A stretch of DNA of 64,000 nt, taken from positions 310,001 through 374,000 of IMG/VR virus record IMGVR_UViG_3300042261_002385; one strand, given 5' to 3'. A model generated the notes under the pieces. The model worked only from the letters and a program-made list of their open reading frames with translations, made no database searches and was not told where the DNA came from. Positions 19,219 to 63,326 of the stretch are shown here, piece by piece (positions within the stretch are counted from its first letter, which is position 1; each line of letters begins with the position of its first letter). A program made the translations under genes and the position numbers.

Positions 19219-19227
19219 TAATATATA
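19219..19227 (+). promoter_or_regulatory. Late-type promoter TAATATATA (exemplar of more than 20 copies)
   Basis: Same 9-mer at 22507, 25742, 37079, 38467, 60198 and elsewhere, usually 4-6 nt before ATG of structural or CTS genes; reminiscent of T4 TATAAATA. Confidence 0.8.
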
Positions 19228-19231
19228 AATT

Positions 19232-21862
19232 ATGGGCAAATTAGAGGCTAAAGGAACTTACATCAGTAAAATGAACTCCACTCAGAAAAAAAACATGGAT
19301 ATCATTATTCAAGTTTTTAAGGATGGAGGCGTAACTAATCCAATTTTTATTGCAGCTGTGCTTGGTATTGTAAGTAAAGAAAGTGCTTTTACAATTCAAA
19401 GAGAAAACATGAACTATACTACTGTAGCTCGATTACAGGAGGTCTTTGGATTAGACAAAACAAAAGCTTCTGAAATTGTCGGTAATGAAAAAGCTATCGC
19501 CAACTGGGTTTATGGGGCCAAACCACATGGTCGAAACAAATCACCACACATAGGTAATACAGGTGCGAATGATGGTTATAATTATAGAGGAGGTGGATTT
19601 AATGGAATTACTTTTAAGGCAGGTTATGAAAAATACTCGGATATAGCTGGATTTGATATGGTGAAAGATCCAGACAAAATTAATAACGCGGTAGTCTCCG
19701 CCAAAATTCTTTTAAAATATTATAGAAATACAGTTCCTCAAGTTGGAAAATCATATGGTAGTGCAACTATGAATGACTTTAAAAATTTAGAAGATGCAGT
19801 TTTGTGTGCATACCACTGCACTGCTGGAACAGGTAAAAAAGTTTCTAAAATTAAAGCCCTTCTTCTCAATGATTCATTAGGTGGAATGACAAAAGCACAA
19901 CATCGAAAAGAGGAATTCTATGAATATGTAAAAAAATTCGCAGGTCTTAAAGAACCATTGGGTGCTGTTTTATCCTCTGGCTCAAGTGGAAATGCTACTC
20001 CTGAAGTTCAAGGGGTCACAGCTTCGGAACAAACTCAACAACCAGCTTCTTTACCAGCACCTCCACCACCACCACCTGATCCACGAGCAGATGGTTATGT
20101 CAAACTTGAGAAAGTTTCAGGTCCAGGTGAGATGATGGGTGAGGTTGAAGCAGAAGTTATTTTTGGTGAAACCATTTTTAAAGGACTTCAATTTGATAAA
20201 GAAGGTGATTACGTTGTAAAGGCATATCACACATTTGAAGGAGTTGAACCATTAGAATTTTTAGTGAAAGTCCAACTTAATGAAAATCCACCCTCAACTG
20301 AAAAACCAACTCAAGAAGAAGAAACTGGAAAAAGACCAATTATTACGCAAATAGACCCACCAACAATTGCTTTAGCTCCAATTCAGATGCCTGTGCCCCA
20401 AGATTCAAACAAACAAGCAAACGCTGAAACACTAAAACAGATAGGTTTGACACCATTTATCTGGTACAATGGTTATCAAATAAAAGAGAATGATATTTAC
20501 TATTTAGTTTTATATTATAAAGGAATAGTTCCGGCAGTAGAAGTGAATTTTATAGACTCAGCAGCCATTCTTAAAAAGGTAGGTTTTCCAGGTTCTGATT
20601 CAACTTTTGATGTATTCATGAATTCTGGAAGTGCAGTTCTTAAGTCTATACACTTAAGAATGAAGATAGATAACTTTCAAGAAAACCCAAACAAAACATA
20701 TACGATGACAGGAACTCTTGATTTGAGAGACTTTTATAAAGTTAACTATAGATCTTGGACCGGAACGTCTTTTGAAGTTTTAAGACAAATGTGTAGTGAA
20801 CTTAAAATTGGATACAACTCTAACATTGATAAAACCGATGATAGTATGAAATGGACCAATACAGGTATGACCTGGAGAGAATTTATGGGTGATGTGATAA
20901 GACATTCTTATATCGCAGATGACTCTTTTACTCTAGCATACATCGATTTTTATTACTGTTTAAACTATGTAGATTTAGAGAAAGAGTGGAGAAGAGATGT
21001 TAGTGCTGACGTTGGTATATCATCAACAGGAACTTCACAAATTGATACTAAAACACCGGATGCTGATAAACTACTACCACTTGTTTTAATGAATGAGAAG
21101 TCTCAGAATAGTGCGAACACTTATTTCTTGAACTACTCTGTTCAAAATAACGCTACTAATAAAGCTATTTCAAATGGTCAATTTACTATAAGTAAATATT
21201 ATGATACTGCGACTAAACAGTTTTTGATTTTCAATGTAGACTCTCTTACGACTCAGGATGATTCCAAAATAATTCTTAAAGGAAAACCAGCAGATTCGAC
21301 GGAATTAGAAACAAACTATACGACTGTATTTGGAGGTAGAGTAGATTTATCTAATGTTCATAAAAACTATCTTTATGCGGATGTTTTAAACAGTAGAAAC
21401 TTGACCGATTTGAGTAAAATTGTAGTCACTTTAGAACTACCTCAATTAAATTTCAACTTGTACAAATTTCAAAAAATTAGAATTCAATTTATCAATGAAG
21501 CTCCAACAATCGCTGAAGAAGATTTAAACCAAAAGAGAATCAGTGGGGAGTGGATGATAGTTGATATAAAATTTTCATGGCAGGCATCCGGAACAAAAGG
21601 AGAAACAGTTCAAACCGTAACCGCAGTTAGAAAAGAATTAGAGAAAATTCCAGAAGACGGTGCCACAACCACTACACAAGAACAAGCAATTCTTAAAGAA
21701 GAAAATGTTAATGAGCTGGCTGTTGAGACACCACCAAATAGCAAATATAAAGTAGATGAAATCTACATTGTTCAAGACAAAGAAGGTAAAACATATGAAT
21801 TTACTGTGACTGAAATTTTAGAAAATGGAGTGGAAGTTAAAGGTTGGTTATATGAAGATTAA
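19232..21862 (+). CDS. Baseplate hub-like protein with N-terminal GH19-like lysozyme domain
   Basis: N-terminal SKESAF..RENMNY...ANWVYG...GNTGANDGYNYRGGG aligns with the GH19 endolysin at 62442; Pro-rich linker; C-terminal region resembles gp27/late-control-D hubs (SGEWMIVDIKF). Confidence 0.65.
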   Translation: MGKLEAKGTYISKMNSTQKKNMDIIIQVFKDGGVTNPIFIAAVLGIVSKESAFTIQRENMNYTTVARLQEVFGLDKTKASEIVGNEKAIANWVYGAKPHGRNKSPHIGNTGANDGYNYRGGGFNGITFKAGYEKYSDIAGFDMVKDPDKINNAVVSAKILLKYYRNTVPQVGKSYGSATMNDFKNLEDAVLCAYHCTAGTGKKVSKIKALLLNDSLGGMTKAQHRKEEFYEYVKKFAGLKEPLGAVLSSGSSGNATPEVQGVTASEQTQQPASLPAPPPPPPDPRADGYVKLEKVSGPGEMMGEVEAEVIFGETIFKGLQFDKEGDYVVKAYHTFEGVEPLEFLVKVQLNENPPSTEKPTQEEETGKRPIITQIDPPTIALAPIQMPVPQDSNKQANAETLKQIGLTPFIWYNGYQIKENDIYYLVLYYKGIVPAVEVNFIDSAAILKKVGFPGSDSTFDVFMNSGSAVLKSIHLRMKIDNFQENPNKTYTMTGTLDLRDFYKVNYRSWTGTSFEVLRQMCSELKIGYNSNIDKTDDSMKWTNTGMTWREFMGDVIRHSYIADDSFTLAYIDFYYCLNYVDLEKEWRRDVSADVGISSTGTSQIDTKTPDADKLLPLVLMNEKSQNSANTYFLNYSVQNNATNKAISNGQFTISKYYDTATKQFLIFNVDSLTTQDDSKIILKGKPADSTELETNYTTVFGGRVDLSNVHKNYLYADVLNSRNLTDLSKIVVTLELPQLNFNLYKFQKIRIQFINEAPTIAEEDLNQKRISGEWMIVDIKFSWQASGTKGETVQTVTAVRKELEKIPEDGATTTTQEQAILKEENVNELAVETPPNSKYKVDEIYIVQDKEGKTYEFTVTEILENGVEVKGWLYED

Positions 21863-21876
21863 AAATAAAATGTAGT

Positions 21877-22509
21877 ATGAAAAAGATAATTTCAAATTCG
21901 TTTAAGTGTGAAATAGGTGACTATAACTGTTTGCAAAATTTAGACCAAACAAATATAGATTCAAATGCTAATATGATTTCAAAAATAAACTCAGAATTGA
22001 AAAATTATTACAAAGAGTTGAAAAAAAATCCATACGTTTCTTCACTCAGAATAACAATAGATGATTTAAATTTTATTGTTAATTGGGAAGCTACAATTGA
22101 CGAAAGTCCAGACGGAAGGGCGTATATAGGATTGGCCTGTAGAGGAGCATCTGGTAAATCAGATGGAGTGGATGGATCCATACATAGAGCATTTATTAAA
22201 ACTGATTCTAAGAAAAAAAAATTACTTAGAGAAGTTTCAAAGAAAACAGAAATTGCAGACATAGCTGATTTCAATTTTCAAACCAAAACATCAGGTTTTA
22301 GTATACGACAAATATTTGTTATTTACACTAATCCAGAAATGTATCCTTACTTACCTAAATCACAAAATAAAAATTTTGTCGTTGGTAAAGTAATTGAAGC
22401 AGATCCAGATAAAATTGACAACAACGGTGAACTAATCTCTTCTCTTCATTCAGGAGAAGCTTATTCTCAGATAATGAATTCATTATTTAGAAGAAACAAA
22501 ACACAATAA
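21877..22509 (+). CDS. Hypothetical protein, homologous to the N-terminal domain of 22521..25712
   Basis: NPYVSSLRITID..FIVNWEATIDESPDGRAYIGL versus NPCITAIKLNVI..WTVEWEVTIEESPDGNAYVGL. Confidence 0.75.
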   Translation: MKKIISNSFKCEIGDYNCLQNLDQTNIDSNANMISKINSELKNYYKELKKNPYVSSLRITIDDLNFIVNWEATIDESPDGRAYIGLACRGASGKSDGVDGSIHRAFIKTDSKKKKLLREVSKKTEIADIADFNFQTKTSGFSIRQIFVIYTNPEMYPYLPKSQNKNFVVGKVIEADPDKIDNNGELISSLHSGEAYSQIMNSLFRRNKTQ

Positions 22510-22520
22510 TATATAATTCG

Positions 22521-25712: not shown

Positions 25713-25754
25713 TAAAAGTTGAATCACAAGCAAGTTTTATTTAATATATAAATC

Positions 25755-28700: not shown

Positions 28701-29213
28701 GCTGCAATTTCACAACCGACATCTAGTTTCTTTGATATAAGAGGAAATCTTAAGTCAACATTAACAGAAGGGGCCAATAAAATAATGACATCATTTGATC
28801 AGGCAGTCGATGATGCAAATTCTTTAACTGATCAAGTGAGTAAAAAGAAAAATGATACAATTAATTTAGTCAAAGGTTTACTAAACCAGGAAGTAGAGGA
28901 ATCAAAGTCAAATATTGGTAAATTCATAAGTGTTGATAGTCTAAAGGAAAAGTTCACAAATGCATCTGAAATTCCAAACAGTTCATTTTTTGATATCAGA
29001 AGTCAAATATCTGGAGAAAAAGGTAATGACACAAGTTCTTTGAACTTAAGAAAGAACCTTTTAAACAACACAATAGATAAAATATATAATACTAAAAATT
29101 CTTCAACCTCACCTATAAAATCAAATACACCACCAGCGACATCATTTTTTGACTTAAAAAATCAACTTAAAGATTTCCTCGGAGGAACCTTAGGTGACAA
29201 ACTAACTGAGTAA
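25755..29213 (+). CDS. Large structural protein (tail/baseplate-like N-terminal half, repetitive Gly/Ser/Leu-rich C-terminal half)
   Basis: 1152-aa ORF in the baseplate cluster, late promoter, overlaps the gp5-like gene. Confidence 0.65.
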   Translation: MANGLSAEDIENLRKEGISITDVNVNTNGLSLTGTAFSSPLEKQKYAIYSARLTQQQLQKIISLNSGSPWPQTQLNPEFSSTTGFLPSVLLQPTLQSNPVSSQFSAGRDATGDVKVTQTYANYKFVDWRGQQLSFPPKSLTTEDRFYAGKDLPRNSPILVDKPYSMRDVPLIFGDGRMDYFRHGLQVIGDGKAVSNLTPIDNNALGASNQRLANFKETPWENEDPPMFGFDIIFDSFSSPLLNGSLTDFIANYSNVSEIASKRQVYEEFKNQFQKFFRINGEMKVDSTQIAMTSLYSTVAGADSASSIHNPHKKNYLGHYVKKISGLDFLIEQNKGDTIKYTPDYKKDFITLQLREDVSMNMGVLAHLYKTLYWSKPNGKMLIPENLLRFNCIIIISECRNFQRVKKGIKNPENINIIKDNLSRYVYTLRECQFYFDKLPLNNEVDLGDQGPTMYESYDVNFDFKYSSVKLERFVPNGDWGNYVGIDGGSIWKVGNKGTRNSRGTTGSQELSTPRFFTVGPDNETYTYYPNLKINGEEKPYIMAVYGPKADQQDEFNFAQKKSSEGTIGGNNEGSGGQNVGQLGAGNDGTNNQTSSSTTGTEASGGGTPGSGLTSPNGSKASTNEGSAAGGSLDALKSQSQQASESSKQQAEITAVQDATNSQKKMAFGSVNAALGDVSLSKITKTVATPLNQVVANKSISSDIVSGKFFDKMGSLKLEDSLKGIKTGGLANLSSLGESLSGSLSGSLSGGLSGLKSAIPSLDSVKTKFSEAKSKATSGFFDIRGNLKSSLTDGVNKAGSLFKGLSSQADGLLGGLGGQASGLLGGLSTQLKGGLPSLDSVKTKFSLAKTQATSGFFDIRGNLKSSLTEGAAGLKTKAGGLFGNLGGQAEGLLGGLTDKVKSAVPSLDSVKTKFSAAKSQATSGFFDIRGNLKSSLTEGSEKLTGGGLFSGLSKQTDGLLSGLTDKVKSSVPSLDSVKTKFSAAISQPTSSFFDIRGNLKSTLTEGANKIMTSFDQAVDDANSLTDQVSKKKNDTINLVKGLLNQEVEESKSNIGKFISVDSLKEKFTNASEIPNSSFFDIRSQISGEKGNDTSSLNLRKNLLNNTIDKIYNTKNSSTSPIKSNTPPATSFFDLKNQLKDFLGGTLGDKLTE
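28026..28770 (+). repeat. Four ~70-75-aa coding repeats with core PSLDSVKTKFSxAxxxxTSxFFDIRGNLKSxLTEG
   Basis: Units start near 28026, 28257, 28461 and 28665; degenerate FFD(I/L/K) copies near 27880, 28985 and 29145. Confidence 0.92.
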
Positions 29214-31486
29214 TGAAAGATAGGAAAGTTGAACAGGGTAAAACCTATGTAGGAGTAGTTGAGGACAATCTAGACCCTGATAAGTTAGGTAGACTCAAAA
29301 TAAGAGTAGTGGATGTTTTTGATGAAGCAAAAGTTGAAGACTTACCATGGGCTTCACCTTGGAAAGATTTAGCTGGTGGTCAAATTGGTATACCAGAAAA
29401 AGGTAAAGTCGTTATATGTGTGTTTGAACAGGGTGATGCTTACAAACCAGAATACATATCAACAGAACACTGGAATATAAATCTTGAAAACAAACTAAAA
29501 GGTCTTTCAGATACAGATTACATTTCCATGAAGTCAGTTATATTTGACCACAAAACTCAAATATATTCTAATGATAGTGAAGGTCTAAAACTAGACTACA
29601 AGTTTAATAATGTAAATATCAAAAATAACGGCATAAATTTAAACTTAAAAGATAACTCAGGTTTAGTAAACATAGGAGATTCAACAGCTAATCAACAAGC
29701 TATTTTAGGAAATCACTTTCTAAATTGGTTTGATTCTTTTGTTGATGCTCTTATGAATAATACAGCATTTTTAGGAAACGCCGGAGCTCCAGTGTTGTCA
29801 AATCCAGCATTAGTAAGAATACTCAGCCAGTATAAATCACAAAAAGATTCTACATTTTTATCACATCATGTAAATTTTGTAGACAATAACAAAGTATCAA
29901 CCGTTAAATTAGAATCCAGAGAAGAAACACCCCAATCAGGTGACACTTGGCAATCTACAAAATCTGAAAACACACTCACTACAACTTCCACTGAAACGAA
30001 TAAACCAACTGACGGAGAAAAACCACCATACGATGAAAAGCATGTCGAGCCAGCAACCGATAAACCCGGTGTGCTACCAACTGAAGTTCCACCTGCTAAA
30101 GTTGTTGAACCACTTCCAGATAAAAGCCTACCAGAATCAAATAAAAAAGTCGAAAAACTCATCTGGTTTCTGAAAAGTAAAAATTATCAGATTTATGAAG
30201 TCAATTCACAAATCAATATGGTAGCCTTTAGATCGAAGAACAAAGTCAAAGATGATGAAAATACAAATATAACTAACTTATTCGATGAAGAACTTTGTGT
30301 TTTTTTCAAAAATGAAAATAATATTTGGGAACTATTTGAATATGCGATTACTACAGTTCCTGGTTATGTCCCGGCTAAAACAGAATTACCAGATAAAGTT
30401 GGAATACTAGCTCTGGGTCAGTATATAGAAAGGTTAAAAATGATTAATTATTTAGGAAATGCCTCATATCCCGCATTATCATTTGATGAGTGCTCGTTAC
30501 ATAGAAATGATAAATTAGATAGATACAATTTTGATGCACCAATCGAAACAGGAAACTTTGCAATGACAATTCATAGGTCCTCAGATGTAAATAGTAGTGA
30601 GTTTGTGTTCAATTATTCCGAAGGAGCTCAAGTTTTCAAAAACTTGAATCAATATGAACAATTCATTAAGATATGTCAAAAACAAATCGACAAAGGTGCA
30701 AAATCTACTTTTACATACACACTCTGCTCTAAAAAAGAATTTGAAGAATATGCTAGTCCGGATGAACAAAGAGAACTAGCTAAAACTTTACCCGCTACAC
30801 TGGAAACAACAACGGTTGCACCAACTGCTTCAACAGCCGTAGCAGCCACTCAAAGTCCACCAGCGAACGAATATAAAAAAGAAATGGAGTCTTTAATAAA
30901 GAGAAGGTTTGCTTCAGAGTCAGGTAAACCTGGAATAAAAAGTTTTATAGATAGATTTACCAAAGATGGTTCTAACTCGTTTGAGGTTAGTAAGTCAATC
31001 TCTTTTGCAGAGGGCATAGGTCGCAAAAATATTGAAGAATTAAATAAAAGTATGTTAGGTTTATCTAAATCAGAAATAGGAGATAATACTATTAAATATT
31101 TGGTTTTAAAAAGAATCTATCCAAAACTGAAAAAAGAACTTCAAAATCACATCAATTATTTAATCAAAAAAGGTAAACTCGATGAAAAAGATTATTACTA
31201 TGTTACTGATGGAAAAAGGTCTATTGAGAAAGGATTATATGTCTGGAGAGTTTCATTCAAAAAAAATCCGGATCCTAAAGCTCCACCAACAACCAATCCG
31301 TTTATCTTACCAAATCTATTATCTGAAACGACTTTTATAGGATTGACTAAGACTTATACTAATTTAAGACTACCAAGTGGTCAATTGCAACCTGATAAAC
31401 CGTCAAAGAATAATAGTTGGGTTCTAGAAGACACAGATCCACCGTTATATTTTGTTGAAATAAAATTTGTTCCATTTACAAAATAA
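29213..31486 (+). CDS. gp5/Vgr-like baseplate spike (OB-fold) fused to a YkuD-like domain and an unknown C-terminal domain
   Basis: YVGVVEDNLDPDKLGRLKIRV...DLPWASP...IPEKG..V...FEQGD..KP.Y OB-fold; middle ITTVPG...GQY...TIHR...YSEGAQVF. Confidence 0.78.
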   Translation: MKDRKVEQGKTYVGVVEDNLDPDKLGRLKIRVVDVFDEAKVEDLPWASPWKDLAGGQIGIPEKGKVVICVFEQGDAYKPEYISTEHWNINLENKLKGLSDTDYISMKSVIFDHKTQIYSNDSEGLKLDYKFNNVNIKNNGINLNLKDNSGLVNIGDSTANQQAILGNHFLNWFDSFVDALMNNTAFLGNAGAPVLSNPALVRILSQYKSQKDSTFLSHHVNFVDNNKVSTVKLESREETPQSGDTWQSTKSENTLTTTSTETNKPTDGEKPPYDEKHVEPATDKPGVLPTEVPPAKVVEPLPDKSLPESNKKVEKLIWFLKSKNYQIYEVNSQINMVAFRSKNKVKDDENTNITNLFDEELCVFFKNENNIWELFEYAITTVPGYVPAKTELPDKVGILALGQYIERLKMINYLGNASYPALSFDECSLHRNDKLDRYNFDAPIETGNFAMTIHRSSDVNSSEFVFNYSEGAQVFKNLNQYEQFIKICQKQIDKGAKSTFTYTLCSKKEFEEYASPDEQRELAKTLPATLETTTVAPTASTAVAATQSPPANEYKKEMESLIKRRFASESGKPGIKSFIDRFTKDGSNSFEVSKSISFAEGIGRKNIEELNKSMLGLSKSEIGDNTIKYLVLKRIYPKLKKELQNHINYLIKKGKLDEKDYYYVTDGKRSIEKGLYVWRVSFKKNPDPKAPPTTNPFILPNLLSETTFIGLTKTYTNLRLPSGQLQPDKPSKNNSWVLEDTDPPLYFVEIKFVPFTK

Positions 31487-31528
31487 TCATTTTCACCATT
31501 TAATATATAAAAATAAAAACTAATAAAA

Positions 31529-31785: not shown

Positions 31786-34008
31786 TTATGGCTTAAATAA
31801 ATCAGTTCCATTGTATTCCCAATGCCAAGGTTCATATCCAGCACCGGCTTTTTTAGCCCAGTTTGGATTAATCCAGCCATATTTTTTTGCATTAGCTTCC
31901 ATCCAGTCGAAATATTGATTGCCTGGACCATTTCCAAAACCACCAATATCTACTGCTTGACCCCAACCATGTTTTGATGTTCCTGGAGGAGCAGCCGCTA
32001 CACCTGTTGGTTTTTTAGCATTAAACGATCCGACTTTTCTACCTTTATTTTTAGGATCGACTTTTTTGGTATATGGATTTAATCCAGTATCATAATAGTC
32101 CCAATCAAAAATTTTGTTCTGAACGTTAAATGTTCTGTATCCATCAGTTATTTTCATGTCTTTACCAAACTGGGCTTTATAAGCTTTGTTTAGTTCATTA
32201 AGTTTCTTTACAGCATTTTTTTCTATCTTGTGACCACAGAAGTCTAATTTTGTTAACAAATTACTTGGTAAATCACCATTAAAAACTGTTCTACCTTGGA
32301 CAGTAAGTTTTTGTTGAAACCTCTTTTGTCCAGAACCACCTCCCTTAGAGGCACTGTCCGTAGCTGTTTTTGCCGACACCTCAACTTCTGGAGTTCCCGT
32401 AGACGCAGTTTCTGCTGCGACAGTAGAAGTTCCTTCAGTTGTTGTAGAACCTTCAGTCTCTTCTTCTAATCCACCAGATTCTCCGAAGGCACTTTGCTCA
32501 GCGTCATTTAAATTAAAGTCAATCTGTTCATCCTCACCGACGAAAGCTTCCTCTAAAAACTCAGGAGATAATCCAGATAAGTCATCAGCTTCATCACTGA
32601 ATATAAATCCTTCTACCGGAACGTCGGCTTCTATATCACCAACCCATATTTGAAATTGAGGAGCAGGCTCATCAGTTTTTACGATCCAATTCTCAGGAAA
32701 CACTGGATTCATTTTTATCAAAACTACCGGTTCACTTTGTGTAGCTGCAATTGCCGCTGATCCACTTCCACCAGTAGCAGGATTTGGAGTAAGAACGTTC
32801 GGATTATCTCCAACTGTTTCCCACTTGAAAGCCTTCCCAGAATCTGTAAAGGACTTTTTAGGTGAATAATCATTTATCAAATCGGTCTCTGGATATGTGT
32901 AACTAGGAACTGCTAACCTTAAGTTATAACTTTTAGCTGAAGGATATGAGGTCGCTAATGACTTAACCCAATTTTCTATTACATTATTTACTATAAATTC
33001 ATCTTTCACTTCATAGCTAAATGTGATAGACAATGGTATTGTAGAATTTGTTATACCACCGGCAAACTCTAAAACATATCTCGGATTGTATTTATCATCA
33101 AATGACCAAAATCTTTCAAACTCCTCATCACCTTCATCATCAGCAGATGGTTGCACCACTGGATTAGGAACAACATAAAAACTTTTGAAAATATAATTTG
33201 GAGTATTCACTTCTTTTAAAGATTCATCTGAATATTCGTAACCTGAAATATTTCTGGTAAAACTCGACGGCCCAGTTTTCGGTAGAGTTAAATCTACAGA
33301 CACACCGGAAACAGAAATCACATAGTCTCCTGTGCCTTGTTCAAAGCCATCATTTAGTGCACTATTTTGAGCGTGCGCTAATGCACTACTAAGTGTATAG
33401 GTATTTGAAAGTGTTACTCCATAAAACTCATCGATACTACCTGTTCCGGTAGATGTTTTATAGTTTAATTCAAAAAAATTAGGAAGTTCTACATCTATAT
33501 CAGCTGGTGATAATCCATCAAGTAAAATCGCTGTGTCAACCAGAATCTTAGTCGGATCAGAAGCTGTTCCATTTCCATAAACTTCATATGCTTCAAATTG
33601 ATAAGTTATTTCTAGATTTTTTCTCCAAGAAATATTAATATAAGCTCCATTATTTAAGTAATATGGATCCTCTCCGAATTTTCTCAACTGAGGAACGTCA
33701 TCAGCCCAAGGATTCTGAACTATTTTAAATAAGTTCGGTCCTAATTTTGAACCTATTTTATTAGCCTCGAATTCCGAATTACTACTAATATACTCTTGTA
33801 TAATTTCGTCATTAGTTTTGGTTTGATATCTCTCACCGTCGTAAATTACTTCTTGCCAATACAACTGACCACTCAGTGAAACTTTACCAACAGCTATTCT
33901 TTGTGAGTTTGACGCTGTTCCTTGTAATAGCATTACTCTTAAATCCAGAGCACCGGTGTTTGCACCTTCTACTATTTTTCTAACTCTTACTTGTTTTAAT
34001 GTATCCAT
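31786..34008 (-). CDS. Large tail-associated protein with C-terminal M15 (VanY-like) Zn D-Ala-D-Ala peptidase
   Basis: ITDGYRTF..Q...AAPPGTSKHGWGQAVDI...YGW...EPWHWEY. Confidence 0.85.
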   Translation of the reverse strand: MDTLKQVRVRKIVEGANTGALDLRVMLLQGTASNSQRIAVGKVSLSGQLYWQEVIYDGERYQTKTNDEIIQEYISSNSEFEANKIGSKLGPNLFKIVQNPWADDVPQLRKFGEDPYYLNNGAYINISWRKNLEITYQFEAYEVYGNGTASDPTKILVDTAILLDGLSPADIDVELPNFFELNYKTSTGTGSIDEFYGVTLSNTYTLSSALAHAQNSALNDGFEQGTGDYVISVSGVSVDLTLPKTGPSSFTRNISGYEYSDESLKEVNTPNYIFKSFYVVPNPVVQPSADDEGDEEFERFWSFDDKYNPRYVLEFAGGITNSTIPLSITFSYEVKDEFIVNNVIENWVKSLATSYPSAKSYNLRLAVPSYTYPETDLINDYSPKKSFTDSGKAFKWETVGDNPNVLTPNPATGGSGSAAIAATQSEPVVLIKMNPVFPENWIVKTDEPAPQFQIWVGDIEADVPVEGFIFSDEADDLSGLSPEFLEEAFVGEDEQIDFNLNDAEQSAFGESGGLEEETEGSTTTEGTSTVAAETASTGTPEVEVSAKTATDSASKGGGSGQKRFQQKLTVQGRTVFNGDLPSNLLTKLDFCGHKIEKNAVKKLNELNKAYKAQFGKDMKITDGYRTFNVQNKIFDWDYYDTGLNPYTKKVDPKNKGRKVGSFNAKKPTGVAAAPPGTSKHGWGQAVDIGGFGNGPGNQYFDWMEANAKKYGWINPNWAKKAGAGYEPWHWEYNGTDLFKP

Positions 34009-34010: not shown

Positions 34011-34541
34011 TTAAACTCCACCTATATTGAAATTATCATTATTTATTCTTACAGAATCTTTAGGATTACCTTTAGCCACTGGTGGTAATGCCAAACCAGT
34101 TTTGTTGTATTTAGATCTTGAACCATCGACTCTTGTCTTTTTAGATGGAACTGAGATTGCAGTAAGTGCCTTGTTTGCCTGAGATGATAAATCAGCTTCC
34201 TCTGTTATTCTATGAGCTGATAAGTCTATTATTGATGGATATTTAATAACTTGTCCTCTTTTGATATTCAACGGATTATCAATATTATTTATTGTAAGCA
34301 ACACATCAATCTCTCCATAATAGTCTTCAATACTGACATAATCAAGTTCATAAATACTTTTCAGAATTAAATCAATTCTCATTTCTTCCTCAATAGGGAC
34401 TATGTACTCGGCTAATTTTATTGTAGGAACAGAATTTAGTATGGTTGATTTAAACAAATCAACTAAAGACTCTGAATTTCCATTACGAGATAGTTGTTCA
34501 TATAACGATTTTATGTTGAAACCTTCACCTAATGACGACAT
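34011..34541 (-). CDS. Baseplate wedge protein, gp53/tail-X LysM-like
   Basis: EEMRIDLILKSIY...LLTINNIDNPLNIKRGQVIKYP. Confidence 0.65.
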   Translation of the reverse strand: MSSLGEGFNIKSLYEQLSRNGNSESLVDLFKSTILNSVPTIKLAEYIVPIEEEMRIDLILKSIYELDYVSIEDYYGEIDVLLTINNIDNPLNIKRGQVIKYPSIIDLSAHRITEEADLSSQANKALTAISVPSKKTRVDGSRSKYNKTGLALPPVAKGNPKDSVRINNDNFNIGGV

Positions 34542-34543: not shown

Positions 34544-36577
34544 TTATTTGTAATTTTTGATAGCATTTTGCTTAGATAACTCAGCAGCAGCTTGTTTCTG
34601 AACCTCTTTTGTAGTTCCGTTAGCAGCTGCTTCACCAACTCCAGATATTTCTTTTTTACCATTTACTAGATATGTAGCTGTTGCTCTAACTCCACCACCT
34701 TGTAAGTCTAAATAAGTTATAGAACCAACCAGCTGAGCAGTTACATTATTAGTATTTGTTTCTTCAACTACAGGGTCCGCCGAATTTGGATTAGAATTCA
34801 CACTTTGGTCACTTAGTCCTTCTTTTGATACCGCGTCATTTGTAGCACCACTTGGATTTGTTGCTGGTGTGCCACCACCTGGAGGAGTTGTGACTCCATC
34901 TGATGTTGCACCAGACTGTGTAGCATAATGATAAGCGTTTTCTGATAGAACTTCTTGAGGATTTAACATAGGACTATCTTTGACTAAATTCACTGTTCTA
35001 ATATTTCCGGTATTGAACTTTGCCATAATTTCCTGTAGACCCCAAGGTCTCGCATTTTCTAAAGTAAAGTCAATTTTTATATTAGCTGGTAAATCATTGA
35101 AAGCCAAAGTCGAACCCATCGTCAACTGAACTGATGTCGTATACATGTCACCTGAACAAAAAATTGGTCGAAGTGGATTTCCAATAGTTACGTGCCAAGG
35201 AGTTGATGGCATACCTGTAAGTGCATATACAATACCTTTTACAGCCTCTTCATATTTATTAACTGTTTTTGATAGTGCGGTGCCAATCGTTTCAAAGAAT
35301 TTTGTAAATGCATTTTGTCCCTCTGTGGCATCCTTTAAAGCTTTATCTTTTTCTTTTGCCTCTTTTTCTAACTCTGCTTTATCTGGTTCTCCTGCTTCTT
35401 CTGGATCTTCCTCACCTCCTGCAGCGAGAGCTGCGTCTGCTTCAGCTTTTGCTTTTGTGGCTTCGTCTACAAATTCCTTGAAGAAATTTATAACAGTATC
35501 TTTTACTGTTTTTATAGCCTCTTCAAGTATACTAACTACTTTTGATATGATGAGTTTAGGATTCTTAACAGCAGCAATAATTGTGGCTCCAAATCCACCG
35601 GATAAACCATAATTGTCACTCGGTGAAGTTCCAAATCTTAAAGCATTTTGTAAAATGTCCATATAAACAATTGTAGGGTCAATACCTGAAATAAACTTTT
35701 GTTCATATTCTACAGTAACTTTTATTGAAACTTTACAATCTAAACCAGAACCAGGTTCACCTTGGGCCACTGTTTTTCTTCTCTTAGCTTCTTTAATCAA
35801 GTTAGGATTTCCAGCTGGTAATCTATCACCACCAGCTGTTTGCTCATACACTCCAATTTTAGCTAAGACAATTCTAGTCAGAGTTTCTGACCAACCAGGT
35901 AAAGGAATTGCGTTAAACAATTCTCCACCAGCACCTCCTAGAGGTGACATTTTAAGAATATCTTGTCCAATACCATTAATTACATCTGTAAAGTCAGCCG
36001 CTGCTGCTTCCCATTGTTCACCAAAAGTAATATCTAAGAAGTCTTCTCCTGGTGGTCTCCAAGTTATTAAAACAACTCTTGGAGATGATTTTATACCAAA
36101 AATATTATCTATCTGTGGTCCACTAAATCTTCTACATATAATTAGCCTGTTATTTGGATAAACCCCCAAGTTTTTAAGGTAAGCAAAATCAGACGGTCTT
36201 AAAGCAGCCGCGCTGTTTGCCGTTTTTTCAACAATGTTCAAAATTGATGTGTCGTAAACGTCATTATTGTGTAGTGTTTTTCTTGTGATACCATTGTAGT
36301 TGTTATCAGTTCCTAAACCAGCGTTTTCTTCTTTACCGGTGGTTGAAATATTACCCCAAGCTTTTACAGCAGCTCCTCCTGAAAAAACAGAAAAAGCACC
36401 ATCTTTTCTACTTAGACCAGCTTTCTTCAATTTAGCTTTATCCGCTTCACGTCCAGAGTTGTAAAGGTTAACATTCAAGTTTCTGCTTTTACCACCATTA
36501 AACGTCGACATACCATCTCTTGTAGGTCCACTAGTAACACCAATTAGACCTAACGGGGAACCACCTAATATAGGCAT
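34544..36577 (-). CDS. Baseplate/tail structural protein (tube-initiator-like)
   Basis: First gene of a late operon; PWHVTIGNP..PIFCSGDM....V.L......FND.P......FTLE resembles tube/baseplate folds. Confidence 0.5.
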   Translation of the reverse strand: MPILGGSPLGLIGVTSGPTRDGMSTFNGGKSRNLNVNLYNSGREADKAKLKKAGLSRKDGAFSVFSGGAAVKAWGNISTTGKEENAGLGTDNNYNGITRKTLHNNDVYDTSILNIVEKTANSAAALRPSDFAYLKNLGVYPNNRLIICRRFSGPQIDNIFGIKSSPRVVLITWRPPGEDFLDITFGEQWEAAAADFTDVINGIGQDILKMSPLGGAGGELFNAIPLPGWSETLTRIVLAKIGVYEQTAGGDRLPAGNPNLIKEAKRRKTVAQGEPGSGLDCKVSIKVTVEYEQKFISGIDPTIVYMDILQNALRFGTSPSDNYGLSGGFGATIIAAVKNPKLIISKVVSILEEAIKTVKDTVINFFKEFVDEATKAKAEADAALAAGGEEDPEEAGEPDKAELEKEAKEKDKALKDATEGQNAFTKFFETIGTALSKTVNKYEEAVKGIVYALTGMPSTPWHVTIGNPLRPIFCSGDMYTTSVQLTMGSTLAFNDLPANIKIDFTLENARPWGLQEIMAKFNTGNIRTVNLVKDSPMLNPQEVLSENAYHYATQSGATSDGVTTPPGGGTPATNPSGATNDAVSKEGLSDQSVNSNPNSADPVVEETNTNNVTAQLVGSITYLDLQGGGVRATATYLVNGKKEISGVGEAAANGTTKEVQKQAAAELSKQNAIKNYK

Positions 36578-36611
36578 ATTTCAAATAAATTATTTTAGAT
36601 TATATATTAAA

Positions 36612-37001: not shown

Positions 37002-37091
37002 TCATATTTTTTAATTTATGGAAATATATATAAACTAAAATATCTTTCCCTATCAAATAATAAATAGGTTTGACATTTTAATATATACCTT

Positions 37092-38465
37092 ATGAAGAAA
37101 TACTCTGATAAATTTCTAAACCAGTCTCAAAAACTTAAGAACGCAGTAGTTGGTTTTGAGTTCGAGTTCTATATGAGAGACCTTTCTTATTATAAGACTT
37201 TAGAGTTACTGAATCAAGAACTTAAACCAATAAAAGTATGGGGATTTAGACAATACCACTCAGACTTTATGCCTGATGCCGAAAACTTCAAAATAGAACC
37301 TGACCTTTCTGGTGGATCAAACATGGTAGAATTAGTTACTGGTCCGATGGATTTTTATGATGCCAAATATTTTCTAATCAAAATCATCAATTTCATACAA
37401 ACTCATGGATATACTAATGAAAAGTCATCTATTCACTTCAATATATCTTTCAAAGATAAAGATTTAAATGACCTAAATCCACTAAAACTAATCTTAAACA
37501 TTGATGAAGATGAAATTTATAGAACTTATCCATCAAGAAAGGGTAATATTTATGCAAAAACTGTAAAAAAAATAATACCTTTCAAAGAATATGATTTCTT
37601 CAATATACCAATTATGGTTGTAAAAAACAATATGAGACTACCAGCTGATAAATATTACGGTATAAACTTTCTACATGTTAACGATAATAAGGAGTCTCAA
37701 AGACTTGAGTTTAGATATATTGGAGGTAAAGACTATGAAAAAAACTCAGGTCAACTAATTTACTTCTTAGAAAGATTTATTATCGATTCTTATGATTCAA
37801 TTGACGCAGATTTTGATCACGAAGATGCTAATAAATTAGAAGAGTATCTTACCAACAACATTAAAAACTACAAAAACCTTTCAAAATATGACAATTTTAT
37901 TGTCGATTTTCCTACTATTCAAATACAAATCGACCAAAACTCACAATATGATGTAGTATCAACATACTATAGTAAAATTTACACAAGAATATTCAATTTA
38001 ATTGACTCAACACAATATTTAAAAGAGTGTATTATAAACTATGTAACTTCGACTCAGACTTTAGAAGTTGTGGATGGTTATGTAAAAACAACAACAACGA
38101 TAAAAAACTTAGACTTTGTAAATTCTAAAATCGAAGGAATATTCGAAGATTGTTTGTTCTTAGGTTGTGAAATAATCAGATCACAGTGTATTAAATCTAA
38201 ACTATTACAGTCAGATGCCGATGACTCAAAAATTCTTAATTGTAGAGTAGACCAGTCAACTTTGAGTAATTGTTACTTTATGGATGGTTATCTAAACGGT
38301 GATATGTATGGTGGTGTATTCCGTTCAGGAAAACTTGGACCATACGCAACTATGGACTCAGAAGTTAAAATTGTCACTGATAACAATAACTTCTTTGATA
38401 CTAAATACGAAGATGAAACTAAAGGAGATAAGAAAGGAGTTATCACTGGTTTTGGTAAGAAATAA
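37092..38465 (+). CDS. Putative amidoligase (COOH-NH2 ligase / glutamate-cysteine-ligase fold)
   Basis: GFEFEF, IEPDLSGG...ELVTGP, SIHFNIS, KYYGINF, RLEFRYIGG. Confidence 0.78.
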   Translation: MKKYSDKFLNQSQKLKNAVVGFEFEFYMRDLSYYKTLELLNQELKPIKVWGFRQYHSDFMPDAENFKIEPDLSGGSNMVELVTGPMDFYDAKYFLIKIINFIQTHGYTNEKSSIHFNISFKDKDLNDLNPLKLILNIDEDEIYRTYPSRKGNIYAKTVKKIIPFKEYDFFNIPIMVVKNNMRLPADKYYGINFLHVNDNKESQRLEFRYIGGKDYEKNSGQLIYFLERFIIDSYDSIDADFDHEDANKLEEYLTNNIKNYKNLSKYDNFIVDFPTIQIQIDQNSQYDVVSTYYSKIYTRIFNLIDSTQYLKECIINYVTSTQTLEVVDGYVKTTTTIKNLDFVNSKIEGIFEDCLFLGCEIIRSQCIKSKLLQSDADDSKILNCRVDQSTLSNCYFMDGYLNGDMYGGVFRSGKLGPYATMDSEVKIVTDNNNFFDTKYEDETKGDKKGVITGFGKK

Positions 38466-38479
38466 ATAATATATAAATT

Positions 38480-42423: not shown

Positions 42424-42840
42424 ATGATTGAAAATGGCACAATAGTCAATGTGCATTACACTGGTAAACTGACCGACGGTAGTGTTTTTGACTCATCAGA
42501 AGGTAGAGGAACTCTACGTTTTGAAATCGGATCTGGTCAAATTATCCCAGGATTTGAAAACGCTCTTATGGGTAAAAAAGTAGGAGATAAAGTTACTGTA
42601 AATATTCAACCAGAACAAGCATACGGTCCTATTATTGAAGAACTTGTCGTTAATGTTCCTCTTGATAGACTACCTGAAAATCTTGAAATGGGTCAGGTCT
42701 TAGAAGCAACTTTAGAGAACGGACAATCTACCAATGTGACCGTAGTTAATATTTCTGAAGAACACGCAACTATCGACGGTAATCATCCACTAGCTGGTCA
42801 AGAGTTAGTGTTTGATATCGAAGTAGTTTCTTTAGGATAA
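42424..42840 (+). CDS. FKBP-type peptidyl-prolyl isomerase (SlyD-like, no His-rich tail)
   Basis: VNVHYTGKLTDGSVFDSSEGR..L.F..G.GQIIPGFE...PEQAYG...DGNHPLAGQELVFDIEVV. Confidence 0.95.
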   Translation: MIENGTIVNVHYTGKLTDGSVFDSSEGRGTLRFEIGSGQIIPGFENALMGKKVGDKVTVNIQPEQAYGPIIEELVVNVPLDRLPENLEMGQVLEATLENGQSTNVTVVNISEEHATIDGNHPLAGQELVFDIEVVSLG

Positions 42841-42987
42841 TTATCTACCCTGTCCTCTGTAAGCTTTTTTATAATTTTTAGAAAACTTACTTTTGGAGTT
42901 TTTCTTTTTAGAGTGAACACCTGGTCTTTTTTTATGAGGCCTTGCAATGTGAACTCTGACGCTTGAAGTAGTGGATTTTTTAGCCAT
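42841..42987 (-). CDS. Small basic protein, 48 aa, ending YRGQGR (not in ORF track)
   Basis: MAKKSTTSSVRVHIARPHKKRPGVHSKKKNSKSKFSKNYKKAYRGQGR; fills the gap exactly; TATATA upstream. Confidence 0.75.
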   Translation of the reverse strand: MAKKSTTSSVRVHIARPHKKRPGVHSKKKNSKSKFSKNYKKAYRGQGR

Positions 42988-43034
42988 ATTTTATTTTAAT
43001 TTTTGTTTATATATAAAATAAAAATTGAAAAAAT

Positions 43035-45306: not shown

Positions 45307-45414
45307 AGTGCTTGTTTTAAAGATTTTTATATTTACAAATATAATAAACTTTTTTAAAATATCAAAAAAGGAATTTTTTATTTAATATATAAGTTATAAA
45401 AAATAAAACAATTT

Positions 45415-49354: not shown

Positions 49355-49482
49355 AATTACAAATTTAGTAAAAAAAATTCAGATTCGCAAAATTATTATA
49401 GTTATATCATGATGTTACATGAATTTTTGTGTTATTTCAACAATTTTGGTAAATATTATATAATTTTTTATATATAAGTTAT

Positions 49483-51812: not shown

Positions 51813-53099
<1,287 letters not shown>

Positions 53100-57365: not shown

Positions 57366-57366
57366 T

Positions 57367-58546: not shown

Positions 58547-58618
58547 CGTTCATAAATTTTATTTTTTTAATTGAAGATTTATATAGTAAAAAAATTTGTT
58601 TCTTTTCTCGGAAATCCT

Positions 58619-58626: not shown

Positions 58627-58630
58627 TTAC

Positions 58631-58890: not shown

Positions 58891-59640
58891 TTAGTGTTTT
58901 AAGTTATTTTCTAAGGTGAAATGAACATTAACACTTATATTTCTTGACCACGCATAAGGCATTGCTGAACCAGCAACTTCAAAAGAAATTCTAAAACTAC
59001 CTCTTTCGTAATCTAAATTACCTAATAATTTTTGAGAAATTTCTTCAACTAAATCAAATAAACTTTGTTCAAATTTATTTAGTGATTTACCACTTCCTCT
59101 TAGTGTGGAAATATCAGTCGATATAATACCATTATCATCAAATTTACTAGTAATAGTCATATTTCCATGCCAGATATCTTGAATATTTTTATTTAAAGAA
59201 ATCCTTAATTCTTCTTGACTAAAATATCCTACTTCTTCATCATCTAAATCAACAGAATGTTTTTGTATATCATAATCCATAAAATTTAATTCAAAGTCTT
59301 GGTCATACAACTCAACTAGACAATTGTTAATCATATTTAGCGTCTCAGGATTATAAGCTGGATCACGATGTCTTAGTTCTCCTGTCTCATCAGACTCTTT
59401 AACATGAGTTACTCCTTTAGCTGGCGCTAAATCTCTTAAATCAGTTACCTCAGATGGTTTTCCTTTTTTTCTCTTACTTTTAGTTCTTAAATAAAAAGAT
59501 GGATCTCCTGAACCATCCATAGCTCCGACACCTGGTAAACTTCCAACTGTTGCTGATACTACAGGTCCAGCTCCAGCAGTTGAGGAAGCAGTTGCTACCG
59601 CATTTTCTTGAAACTTTTTATATGATTTGATATATCTCAT
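58891..59640 (-). CDS. Two-module hypothetical protein with CTS-like N-terminus
   Basis: MRYIKSYKKFQEN; Ala/Gly-rich then basic segment ending HVKE/S, followed by an acidic globular domain. Confidence 0.72.
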   Translation of the reverse strand: MRYIKSYKKFQENAVATASSTAGAGPVVSATVGSLPGVGAMDGSGDPSFYLRTKSKRKKGKPSEVTDLRDLAPAKGVTHVKESDETGELRHRDPAYNPETLNMINNCLVELYDQDFELNFMDYDIQKHSVDLDDEEVGYFSQEELRISLNKNIQDIWHGNMTITSKFDDNGIISTDISTLRGSGKSLNKFEQSLFDLVEEISQKLLGNLDYERGSFRISFEVAGSAMPYAWSRNISVNVHFTLENNLKH

Positions 59641-59658
59641 TTAGATATATATTAAATT

Positions 59659-60165: not shown

Positions 60166-60211
60166 AGTTTATATATTAAATATATAATTTGTAAGATTAA
60201 TATATACTTTT

Positions 60212-61669: not shown

Positions 61670-61672
61670 TTT

Positions 61673-62386
61673 ATGAAGAATATAATAACCAATTTTAGGA
61701 TTTTTGAAAAAAAAGAAATTGAAAAAGAGCAAAAATTTCAGCCTTCTAGTGAAGTGCAAAAAGAAGTTGACCGATTCGAAACAAGGTGGGAAATTAAGTT
61801 AGATCCACGTTTCACTATGAAAGAGATAGAAATCATTTCAGAAGGATTAGAATATTATAATACTAAATTTATTAAAAGTAGAATTGATAGAATAATTAGA
61901 AAAGATTTAGGTGGAGTTCATGGTCGTTGGAAAAATACCGAGACAAAAAAATGGATGACACTAAATCCTAGAATCTTTAATTTTAAACGTAGATGGAAAG
62001 ATGAAGACACTGATATACCATATGCACTTTTCACAGTAGTTCATGAGATAGCACATTGTGTTGACTACTTAGAAAAAATATCGTTCTCAAAAAAGTGGCA
62101 AGCAATCTCTGGTTGGAAAAAATGTGATATCAATGATAGAATACCAGAAGGATACAAAAGATATATTGAAAAAAGACCAGGTAGAAAATTAACCGGTCAT
62201 AAAAAATCAGGATGGATTTATAAAGAAGGTTCTGACTTTTGTAGAAAATATACGTCTCGAAATCCAAGAGAAGATTTCGCTGACTGTTTGGCATTTGTAA
62301 TTTTAGGATTTGAAGAAAAACTAAAAGGAGAAGGAGGCTTGAAAAAGCTTGAAATCATTAAGCAATTACTCAAAAAGATAGATTAA
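61673..62386 (+). CDS. Zincin-like metallopeptidase
   Basis: HEIAH followed by Y..RNPREDFAD (downstream Glu ligand). Confidence 0.68.
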   Translation: MKNIITNFRIFEKKEIEKEQKFQPSSEVQKEVDRFETRWEIKLDPRFTMKEIEIISEGLEYYNTKFIKSRIDRIIRKDLGGVHGRWKNTETKKWMTLNPRIFNFKRRWKDEDTDIPYALFTVVHEIAHCVDYLEKISFSKKWQAISGWKKCDINDRIPEGYKRYIEKRPGRKLTGHKKSGWIYKEGSDFCRKYTSRNPREDFADCLAFVILGFEEKLKGEGGLKKLEIIKQLLKKID

Positions 62387-62441
62387 TTTGAAATTTTAAG
62401 TGTTTTTTACTTTATATATAACTTAAAAATAAATTTAAGAT

Positions 62442-63272
62442 ATGTTATTAAAAGTAGGAAGTAAGGGAGATGATGTAAAAAAACTCCAAACAAAATTAGG
62501 ATTGACATCAGATGGTTCTTTCGGACCTGGAACTGAAAAAGCAGTTAAGGCTTGGCAAACAGCAAATGGACTAAAAGCGGATGGTATAGTAGGTGATGGA
62601 ACCTGGTCTAAACTATTCGGAGAATCAGCTCCAGTAGCTGCAGCAAAACCAGCAGTTGTAATACCACCATCCGATTTCAAATTGGAAGCACTAAAAGGAC
62701 ATATTCCAGATGCGGTTATAGCTCAAATACCGGATACAGCAGCAAAATTTAATATCACAAATCCATTGAGATTGGCTCATTTTTTAGCACAATGTGGTCA
62801 CGAAAGTGGTGGATTTAAAGCAGTTTCAGAAAATCTAAACTATTCAGCCAAAGGATTACTTGGAACTTTTCCAAAATACTTTAACGCTACAACAGCTGCT
62901 CAATATGAAAGAAAACCAGAAATGATTGCTTCAAGAGTTTATGGTGGAAGAATGGGCAACGGAGATGAATCTACAAAAGAAGGATTTAAGTTTAGAGGAA
63001 GAGGATATATTCAATTAACTGGAAAATCAAACTACACTAATTTTACGAAATTTATTGGAGAAGATTGTATTGCAAATCCAGATTTAATTGCTACAAAATA
63101 TCCTTTAGCTTCAGCAGCTTTCTTCTTTGATTCAAATAAACTTTGGTCAATATGTGATTTAGGTTCATCTGATGATGTTGTAACTAAAGTTACTAAGAGA
63201 GTTAATGGGGGAACTATTGGATTAGCTGATAGAATTAAACACTTTAAAGAATATTATGCTCTATTAAAATAA
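62442..63272 (+). CDS. Endolysin: peptidoglycan-binding domain plus GH19
   Basis: LKVGSKGDDVKKLQ..L....DG.FG..T..AV..WQ...GL.ADGIVG; FLAQCGHESGGF, FRGRGYIQLTG, VTKRVNGG.IGL.DR. Confidence 0.95.
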   Translation: MLLKVGSKGDDVKKLQTKLGLTSDGSFGPGTEKAVKAWQTANGLKADGIVGDGTWSKLFGESAPVAAAKPAVVIPPSDFKLEALKGHIPDAVIAQIPDTAAKFNITNPLRLAHFLAQCGHESGGFKAVSENLNYSAKGLLGTFPKYFNATTAAQYERKPEMIASRVYGGRMGNGDESTKEGFKFRGRGYIQLTGKSNYTNFTKFIGEDCIANPDLIATKYPLASAAFFFDSNKLWSICDLGSSDDVVTKVTKRVNGGTIGLADRIKHFKEYYALLK

Positions 63273-63326
63273 AAATCAAAAAAATGATTTTAGAAAATAA
63301 TATATAAAAAAAATAATTTTACTAAA

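Follow-up and report, generated by a model that had tools for sequence, protein, structure and literature searches.

Start-codon-adjacent A/T boxes as a predicted leaderless promoter class in a Mahaphage-related genome

Here we describe a 64,000-nucleotide stretch of viral DNA (the window), which corresponds to bases 310001-374000 of the 436,265-bp virus record IMGVR_UViG_3300042261_002385 (31% G+C), and a short A/T-only box, AATATATA, that precedes many of its genes. We consider it likely that this box marks a sigma-read promoter class giving leaderless or near-leaderless mRNAs at about 60-70 genes and leadered mRNAs at the others. In the mechanism we favor, AATATATA (extended form, TTTAATATATA) would be the -10-like element of the phage's own promoter class, present in about 130-150 copies. 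The host RNA polymerase core and a phage sigma would read the box without a -35 element, and the best candidate for that sigma is a homolog of T4 gp55 of 121 amino acids (aa). Transcription would start about 5 nucleotides (nt) after the box, which would place the box at -12 to -5, one base off the -13 to -6 of T4. We call class A those genes whose start codon lies 4-7 nt after the box, and class B those with a leadered arrangement, at 17-25 nt. Class A, with about 60-70 genes, would give mRNAs whose 5' end is the A of the AUG or a base 1-3 nt before it, leaderless or nearly so. For class B (also about 60-70 genes), we predict an A-rich leader of 12-20 nt without a Shine-Dalgarno (SD) sequence, the type of leader that Bacteroidota ribosomes use. 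Host-type sigma-A promoters (TTG, 17-21 nt, TAnnTTTG) would be fused to the ATG at the same offset.

Placement of the box and its distance from start codons

In the window, TAATATATA occurs 21 times, where 2.18 copies are expected, and none of 100 dinucleotide-preserving shuffles reached 21. Genome-wide there are 169 copies of AATATATA, 128 of them in the sense orientation and no more than 60 nt upstream of a called start codon. By the same measure, 97 of the 113 genomic copies of TAATATATA lie upstream of a start, and the other 16 correspond to the chance level. A position-weight matrix (PWM) built from the motif sites found about 150 sites in the genome, and 86% of those scoring at least 13 bits were within 32 nt upstream of a start codon. 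The genes behind the motif have a divergent upstream neighbor in 42-51% of cases, compared with 18% for motif-less genes, which lie a median of 5 nt behind a co-directional gene. At two class A promoters an intrinsic terminator directly abuts the promoter, with only the box between terminator and ATG. The TAA of TAATATATA is the stop codon of the preceding gene at 8 of the 113 sites, for example at 22507-22509 of the window, showing how tightly promoters are fitted into the ends of genes. Across 59 class A and 63 class B sites, sequence profiles revealed no -35-like conservation, only an A/T-tract bias upstream of TTTAATATATA. Being upstream, in sense, at the heads of transcription units and kept in relatives, the motif behaves as a promoter would, a conclusion that these patterns support.

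Seven promoters have an identical 17-mer, AATATATAAAAGAAAAA, which spans the box and the start of the leader (window 11919-11926, minus strand; G000, whose numbers count along the genome, 63363, 267347, 385752, 389187, 396147 and 401831). One of these promoters sits just downstream of the capsid gene. The AATATATAAAAGAAAAA promoters may represent a high-expression subclass.

An earlier note on this DNA had listed eight sites in the window at which the box ends just before an ATG. All eight are real and their offsets were given correctly: 4 nt at 19232, 25755, 37092 and 38480, and 5 nt at 22521, 60212, 9758(-) and 5738(-). The window adds seven more of the same kind, at 3003(-), 10413, 47717 (GTG), 49483, 53684, 59640(-) and 60165(-), so that it holds 15 class A genes. 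The boxes before 59640, 60165 and 60212 lie in divergent spacers and are described further below; the others are as follows.

19220-19227, plus strand: AATATATA box, class A, 4 nt before ATG 19232; 876-aa product with an endolysin-like N-terminus; predicted leaderless
22508-22515, plus strand: box 5 nt before ATG 22521; 1063-aa product with a weak CHAP match; TAA 22507-22509 ends the gene 21877-22509
25743-25750, plus strand: box 4 nt before ATG 25755 (1152 aa); leads an operon to which the baseplate-hub gene 29213-31486 (Phage_base_V domain) belongs
37080-37087, plus strand: box 4 nt before ATG 37092; 457 aa, amidoligase-like
38468-38475, plus strand: box 4 nt before ATG 38480; 741 aa
9764-9771, minus strand: box 5 nt before ATG 9758(-); 260 aa
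5744-5751, minus strand: box 5 nt before ATG 5738(-); 183 aa
3011-3018, minus strand: box 7 nt before ATG 3003(-); 372 aa
10400-10407, plus strand: box GAATATATA, 5 nt before ATG 10413; 167 aa
47705-47712, plus strand: box 4 nt before the GTG start 47717; 217 aa
53671-53678, plus strand: variant box TATATATA, 5 nt before ATG 53684; GH108 lysozyme-like, 336 aa
49469-49476, plus strand: variant box TATATATA, 6 nt before ATG 49483; 188 aa

To describe the spacing, ATGs after the box were counted genome-wide without gene calls. At offsets 0, 1, 2 and 3 after AATATATA we observed 2, 2, 2 and 1 ATGs, where chance predicts about 2.7, and nearly all of them open short open reading frames (ORFs). At offsets 4, 5, 6 and 7 there were 28, 17, 10 and 6, and the ORFs opened were up to 1152 codons long. 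Offsets 9-15 are almost empty, and a second mode follows at 17-25 nt, with an A-rich leader (about 60 genes). Starts at offset 4 comprise 27 ATG, 5 GTG and no TTG; GTG is found at this offset only, and TTG never. At far-mode (class B) sites, bases 5, 6 and 7 after the box are A in 87%, 76% and 84% of cases, respectively; at class A sites with offset 4, base 5 coincides with the first letter of the start codon, A or G. Thus, the A at base 5 in class B and the start-codon purine in class A agree on one candidate transcription start, the purine at base 5 past the box. This geometry supports mRNAs that would start at the AUG or 0-3 nt before it. The idea that the box implies leaderless mRNA is in this way upheld, as a prediction from geometry, for about 60 genes, but it does not extend to the whole class, as about half of the motif promoters have a predicted A-rich leader. 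A box at a fixed short distance from the start of first operon genes, which is the criterion for group C in GeneMarkS-2 (PMC6028130), is what we observed here, with the mode at 4-5 nt. The class B boxes in the window include the following.

10927-10934, plus strand: 20 nt before ATG 10955; A-rich spacer
36601-36608, minus strand: 23 nt before ATG 36577(-); heads the operon 34544-36577, 34011-34541, 31786-34008, whose last gene (31786-34008) carries a VanY peptidase domain
31502-31509, plus strand: 19 nt before ATG 31529
45384-45391, plus strand: 23 nt before ATG 45415
63299-63306, plus strand: 20 nt before ATG 63327
16395-16402, minus strand: 21 nt before ATG 16373(-)

An SD core (GGAG, GAGG or AGGA) was present at -20 to -4 in 11 of 483 genes, which is below the control windows (45 and 33), and in none of the 59 class A genes. 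The absence of SD sequences noted before is therefore true of the box-driven genes but not specific to them. As the lack is genome-wide, we regard it as a background trait of the genome (PMC6028130), one that fits a Bacteroidota host; Bacteroidota use A/U-rich non-SD signals close to the start codon (PMC6028130).

The genome carries a second promoter type. TAnnTTTG occurs 50 times upstream of box-less genes (10.9 expected), and the full TTG-N17-21-TAnnTTTG arrangement, which is the Bacteroidota sigma-A promoter, 18 times (1.5 expected). After the host-type TAnnTTTG, ORF-opening ATGs number 13, 9 and 5 at offsets 4, 5 and 6, versus 1-3 at offsets 0-3; after the full promoters, ATGs number 7, 3 and 2 at the same offsets of 4, 5 and 6. 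Mapped starts in Flavobacterium psychrophilum place TAnnTTTG at -12 to -5, and only 5.5% of the mRNAs of this species are leaderless (PMC9723704). With the box at this position, offset 4 puts +1 on the A of the ATG. Two unrelated boxes agree in both floor and mode, which would be difficult to account for if the start codon were not at the RNA 5' end. Since host-type boxes are also ATG-fused at this offset, the leaderless design would be a trait of the genome and not of one promoter class. Leaderless early mRNAs are thus predicted from ATG-fused host-type boxes, for example for the NAD-dependent DNA ligase gene (G000:83597-85417, minus strand). Three such boxes were identified in the window.

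6588-6595, plus strand: host-type -7 box TAAATTTG, 4 nt before ATG 6600; the gene is directly upstream of the IF3 gene
49360-49367, minus strand: host-type -7 box TAAATTTG, TTG farther upstream; ATG 49354(-) follows after 5 nt, 253 aa
56726-56733, plus strand: host-type -7 box, TTG farther upstream; ATG 56739 follows after 5 nt, 208 aa

Conservation was analyzed in 38 related IMG/VR contigs, in which the protein encoded at 37092-38465 is 56-81% identical. In 36 of the 38 relatives the box is kept 4-7 nt before the ATG orthologous to 37092, and the spacer and the upstream flank vary freely. Synonymous changes in the otherwise conserved codons 2-4 of these orthologs confirm the start codon. Pooling the offsets in the related loci gave 47 boxes at 4 nt, 18 at 5, 7 at 6, 5 at 7 and none at 0-2, with a second mode at 18-22. 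Offsets of the host-type box showed no peak in the 38 related loci, these regions having too few sites. In published genomes, AATATATA-N4-ATG occurs 55 times in LR745206 (control, 5) and 29 times in LR756504 (control, 2), and it is unenriched in LR756501, LR756500, Lak-C1, pT24 and T4. The TATA-type boxes of more distant phages (ATATATA, or the T4-like ATAAATA) are almost only found 15-30 nt from the ATG, and ATAAATA is the top upstream 7-mer in both Lak-C1 and pT24, which have gp55 homologs. Because the boxes of the distant phages are at a leadered distance, the leadered design looks ancestral, and the ATG fusion appears to have been gained in the subclade to which this genome belongs.

The candidate sigma and competing explanations

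The genome contains three sigma genes and two recognizable promoter motifs. A search for the gp55 homolog, which the earlier note had proposed, located it outside the window, at G000:256599-256964 (plus strand). The 121-aa protein matches phrog_234 (E 3.9e-7), has a weak Sigma70_r2 hit and aligns by hhalign with T4 gp55 over residues 7-107, the sigma-R2 domain (probability 78%, E 1.7e-5); phmmer of the homolog against PDB sequences returned nothing meaningful. T4 gp55 binds A(-9), A(-12) and A(-8) in pockets made by N13, Y97 and T99, respectively (PMC7892883), and the alignment shows all three residues kept in the homolog. The T4 late box is TATAAATA, at -13 to -6, and a natural variant with A at -13 is AATAAATA (PMC2988020). 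AATATATA agrees with TATAAATA at 6 of 8 positions and with AATAAATA at 7 of 8, the sole mismatch being at -9. The A's at T4 positions -12 and -8, which enter deep gp55 pockets, are thus kept in AATATATA, and the A at -9 is a T, which makes the box a sequence variant and not the consensus. As the pocket residues are kept and the box is one base from AATAAATA, we favor the gp55 homolog as the reader. The gp55 homologs have in common a conserved hydrophobic C-terminus, which could bind a clamp.

The gp55-like gene lies 53 nt behind an TTAATATATA box, itself directly after an intrinsic terminator, and an ATG 2 nt after this box opens a 13-codon mini-ORF. This arrangement could reflect auto-activation or a regulatory leader. 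Another of the sigma genes (G000:414577-415401, minus strand) has a 274-aa product with 50-53% identity to primary sigmas of Bacteroidota.

Several observations weigh against a gp55-read, leaderless promoter class. A terminator precedes the box at few sites (7 of 127), and for this reason we rejected terminators as general proof of new transcription units, while they remain useful for single cases. The box also precedes non-structural genes, namely those for an amidoligase-like protein, the RNR large subunit and a GATase. T4 numbering would put +1 on the T of the ATG at offset 4, so that the start would have to be one base closer, or flexible. The H95F change in gp55 was considered as the cause of the altered box and was discarded, as it occurs in TATATA-box and TAAATA-box phages alike. 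The C-terminal domain of the gp45 clamp (PF09116, gp45-slide_C) had no match in the genome; the clamp is possibly divergent. No RNA polymerase genes, T7-like ones included, were found in the genome by Pfam (PF00562, PF00623, PF00940), which is a weak negative, since divergent jumbo-phage RNA polymerases can escape Pfam and PF00940 was silent in control genomes too. Finally, a second candidate reader exists, a 199-aa protein of the sigma-70 family (G000:82057-82656, minus strand) to which no promoter motif is assigned and which all five relatives tested have in conserved form.

The last point leads to the strongest competitor, in which promoter and start site would be the same and the 199-aa sigma would read the box, or two sigmas would split classes A and B. 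The excess of sigma genes (three) over recognizable motifs (two) fits this proposal, as does the conservation of the 199-aa protein; as it is present in every relative tested, we rejected its distribution as a discriminator. An A-tract about 30 nt upstream of the predicted start is also somewhat stronger in class B than in class A and could be a weak contact of sigma region 4. However, there is no defined -35 element, the box nearly equals that of T4 gp55, and gp55-bearing phages from Lak to pT24 have TATA-type upstream motifs in common. ECF-like sigmas, moreover, normally read GC-containing -35 and -10 elements. We regard a 199-aa-sigma reader as unlikely, but as an option to be taken seriously. 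A start inside or upstream of the box, as with single-subunit or other phage RNA polymerases, would give class A a leader of 5-15 nt that includes the box. Phage-type polymerase promoters resemble a 9-mer A/T-rich box, and a divergent enzyme could have escaped the Pfam models, given the silent PF00940 control. Such a start would nevertheless leave unexplained the sharp lower limit of 4 nt, the purine five bases past the box and the identical offset profile of TAnnTTTG, whose start site is known; in addition, three sigma genes were detected and no RNA polymerase gene was picked up by Pfam. These points make it quite improbable.

An even smaller chance is given to the motif acting in RNA, as a signal of the 5' untranslated region (a ribosome-binding element of non-SD type, or the target of a translational regulator), instead of as a promoter. 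Bacteroidota do use A/U-rich non-SD signals near the start codon (PMC6028130), and the class A motif is very near it. One offset mode would be expected of a ribosome-binding signal, but two are seen (4-7 and 17-25 nt); the motif occurs at the first genes of units and is mostly absent from internal genes; divergent spacers of 15-21 nt leave no room for another promoter; terminator, box and ATG stand directly in series at two genes; and the motif is akin to the T4 late box in a genome with a gp55 homolog. A compositional artefact of an AT-rich genome, to which the 31% G+C might point, is hardly credible given the shuffles, none of which attained the observed count, and an excess that is strand-specific, upstream of genes, offset-locked and conserved across relatives. 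For class B, an archaeal-type TATA box at -26 was also tried and rejected, as peptidoglycan hydrolases, sigma factors and Bacteroidota-type promoters are present. We thus retain a promoter read by the gp55 homolog as the preferred reading. The original view of a divergent late sigma that reads a palindromic core and gives near-leaderless translation survives in part: the gp55 homolog and the predicted geometry are consistent with it, but 'late' applies only partially and half of the promoters appear to be leadered.

Shared cores, driven genes and the phage IF3 gene

The earlier note had also proposed that single cores between divergent genes, near 43008 and 59647, might fire both ways. Both cores exist, and the divergent spacers of interest in the window are listed here.

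43006-43017, no strand assigned: perfect palindrome TTTATATATAAA, 19-20 nt from two ATGs, 43035(+) and 42987(-), the second of which opens a 48-codon ORF; two-way promoter candidate, leadered class
59646-59653, minus strand: box 5 nt before ATG 59640(-), with a TATATA core common to the plus-strand GATATATA, which is 7 nt before ATG 59659; candidate two-way promoter
60170-60206, no strand assigned: back-to-back boxes in a 46-nt divergent spacer, with 60170-60177(-) 4 nt before ATG 60165(-) and 60199-60206(+) 5 nt before ATG 60212(+)
13650-13661, no strand assigned: perfect palindrome TAATATATATTA between divergent genes, 21 nt from ATG 13680(+) and 33 nt from ATG 13619(-)

The spacer between 59640 and 59659 measures 18 nt in total, and the one between 60165 and 60212 holds a third box (60179-60186, plus strand) 25 nt from 60212. 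Divergent gene pairs with 15, 17, 18 and 21 nt between start codons each hold one TATATA core; the spacers of 15, 17 and 21 nt are outside the window. A good box in both orientations was found only at G000 158213/158235 and at 59640/59659 of the window, in addition to the palindrome 43006-43017; in two of the four shortest spacers, the second orientation does not have the key A at box position 2. Firing in both directions at a few shared cores is plausible from these arrangements. Two-way bacterial promoters arising from the symmetry of the -10 element are documented (PMC10268837, PMC12825309) and, as here, they have a palindromic A/T core common to the divergent genes. The predicted start-to-start spacing is about 14-21 bp here, versus the 18 bp typical of sigma-70. 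The 48-codon ORF beside the palindrome (42841-42987, minus strand) is a putative gene for a very basic, K/R-rich peptide that ends in GQGR and has no Pfam hit.

The motif-driven genes were annotated with Pfam and PHROG; most of them had no hit, hence the functional split is coarse. Structural genes driven by the box include those for the T4-type portal, the terminase and the sheath and the baseplate-hub operon, and the gp23-like capsid gene has a variant box. The GH108 lysozyme-like gene is also box-driven. Host-type promoters precede mostly enzyme genes (ligases, CoaE, peptidases) and also an ABC transporter gene. To call these promoters 'late' is accurate only in part: the box stands before structural and enzyme genes alike, and ATG fusion also occurs at host-type promoters. 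We infer that 'phage-specific, middle to late' would fit the timing better.

The same note suggested that near-leaderless translation might be tuned by the phage's own IF3.

6967-7506, plus strand: phage IF3 gene, 179 aa, full length; closely followed on the same strand by the family-B DNA polymerase gene 7542-8975

This gene stands behind host-type boxes, in a cluster with the family-B DNA polymerase gene. Raised IF3 inhibits leaderless translation in E. coli (PMC9031893). LR745206 has no IF3 and the strongest ATG-fused design, and LR756501 and LR756500 have IF3 and no such design; this genome and LR756504 have both, and Lak-C1 lacks IF3 and shows the design, if at all, as a weak trace. We therefore rejected IF3 tuning, for which there is no support, as the presence of IF3 does not track the ATG-fused design among the relatives. 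The 477-aa protein encoded directly after the IF3 gene matches the family-B DNA polymerase profile only at positions 137-237 of 453. It may be one part of a split polymerase; in phage pT24, too, two genes are called 'DNA polymerase'.

Known systems and genome context

The closest known counterpart is the T4 late promoter (TATAAATA, read by gp55 with gp33 and the gp45 clamp). Both systems have an 8-bp A/T-only box, at -10 in T4 and at a predicted -10 position here, and no -35, and this phage also encodes a gp55-family sigma with the A-pocket residues. The portal, terminase, sheath and baseplate genes are box-driven here, and a T4-type portal, terminase and gp23-like capsid are common to the two phages. 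In contrast to T4, the box of this phage has T for A at -9, its sigma is 121 aa and does not have the C-terminal third of T4's, no gp45-type clamp domain was detected in the genome, and the box also precedes enzyme genes. In addition, about half of the boxes are ATG-fused here, whereas T4 has 0 matches to ATAWATA-N4-ATG.

Similarities also exist with the GeneMarkS-2 'group C' (Actinobacteria, Deinococcus) and with lambda cI, in which a -10 box lies at a fixed short distance before first operon genes, there is no SD, and AUG or GUG is the predicted 5' end. However, the inferred host phylum belongs to 'group B' (non-SD, leadered), with about 5.5% leaderless mRNAs in F. psychrophilum, whereas some 40-50% of the recognizable promoters are start-codon-fused here, across two unrelated promoter types. 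The Bacteroidota sigma-A promoters (-33 TTTG, -7 TAnnTTTG) are present on the phage as a class separate from AATATATA and are often ATG-fused there at offset 4-5. We put forward, tentatively and as a rather doubtful extension, that a Mahaphage-like subclade rebuilt about 40-50% of its recognizable units, of gp55 type and sigma-A type, so that the mRNA begins at the AUG.

If this is true, there would be two groups of mRNA, one with a 5'-terminal AUG and the other with A-rich leaders of about 15 nt, and leaders of about 5-11 nt would be nearly absent. Phage mRNAs could then enter a separate initiation route (70S or 5'-end dependent), by which they could be favored over those of the host. The Mahaphage and Lak huge phages are uncultured, and in the literature searched we found nothing published on their transcription or on the translation of their mRNAs in SD-less hosts. 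The present analysis supplies a concrete promoter code, with two box types, about 200 sites and three phage sigma genes, and predicts the transcription start to the single base in a testable manner. It also suggests that one subclade uses the leaderless design far more than its host phylum. Should RNA mapping confirm the prediction, these phages would be a natural system for leaderless, 5'-end-dependent initiation in Bacteroidota, gene-start annotation of such genomes would improve, and the T4 gp55 model would extend to a shorter sigma with an altered box.

IMG/VR labels the record a 'provirus', and its completeness by CheckV is 95%. The genome encodes a structural set consisting of a T4-type portal, large terminase, gp23-like capsid, sheath and baseplate hub. 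A megablast of window positions 19000-41000 against phage records gave no match, and there are no tRNA genes in the window. Among published genomes, LR745206 and LR756500-504 ('Mahaphage', 634-735 kb) are nearest, and the Lak phages come next. In LR745206 and LR756502 the amidoligase-like protein is 68-74% identical and the gp55 homolog 90-93%; in LR756504 the values are 43% and 60%, respectively. The Mahaphage clade of huge phages, which includes Lak, has Bacteroidota as predicted host (Al-Shayeb et al. 2020, PMC7162821). Sigma-A-type promoters and a sigma-A-like gene on the genome point to the same phylum, matching the clade prediction, and the phage host is probably a member of the Bacteroidota. 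Like this genome, the clade carries IF3 and other translation genes (PMC7162821), but the ATG-fused boxes are confined to the subclade around this genome. Neither PMC7162821 nor the related literature searched describes promoters or a leaderless design in these phages.

Other features of the genome were observed. A 20-kb region (G000:280001-300000) has 40% G+C, versus 31% elsewhere, and holds a 3055-codon ORF (291033-300200, minus strand). Two neighboring proteins of 909 and 543 aa, encoded at G000:138102-142479 (minus strand), contain long collagen triple-helix repeats and are probably fibres. Within the window, auxiliary genes encode an adenylosuccinate synthetase (51813-53099, minus strand; E 7e-172) and an FKBP-type prolyl isomerase (42424-42840, plus strand), and the amidoligase-like protein encoded at 37092-38465 (plus strand) is highly conserved.

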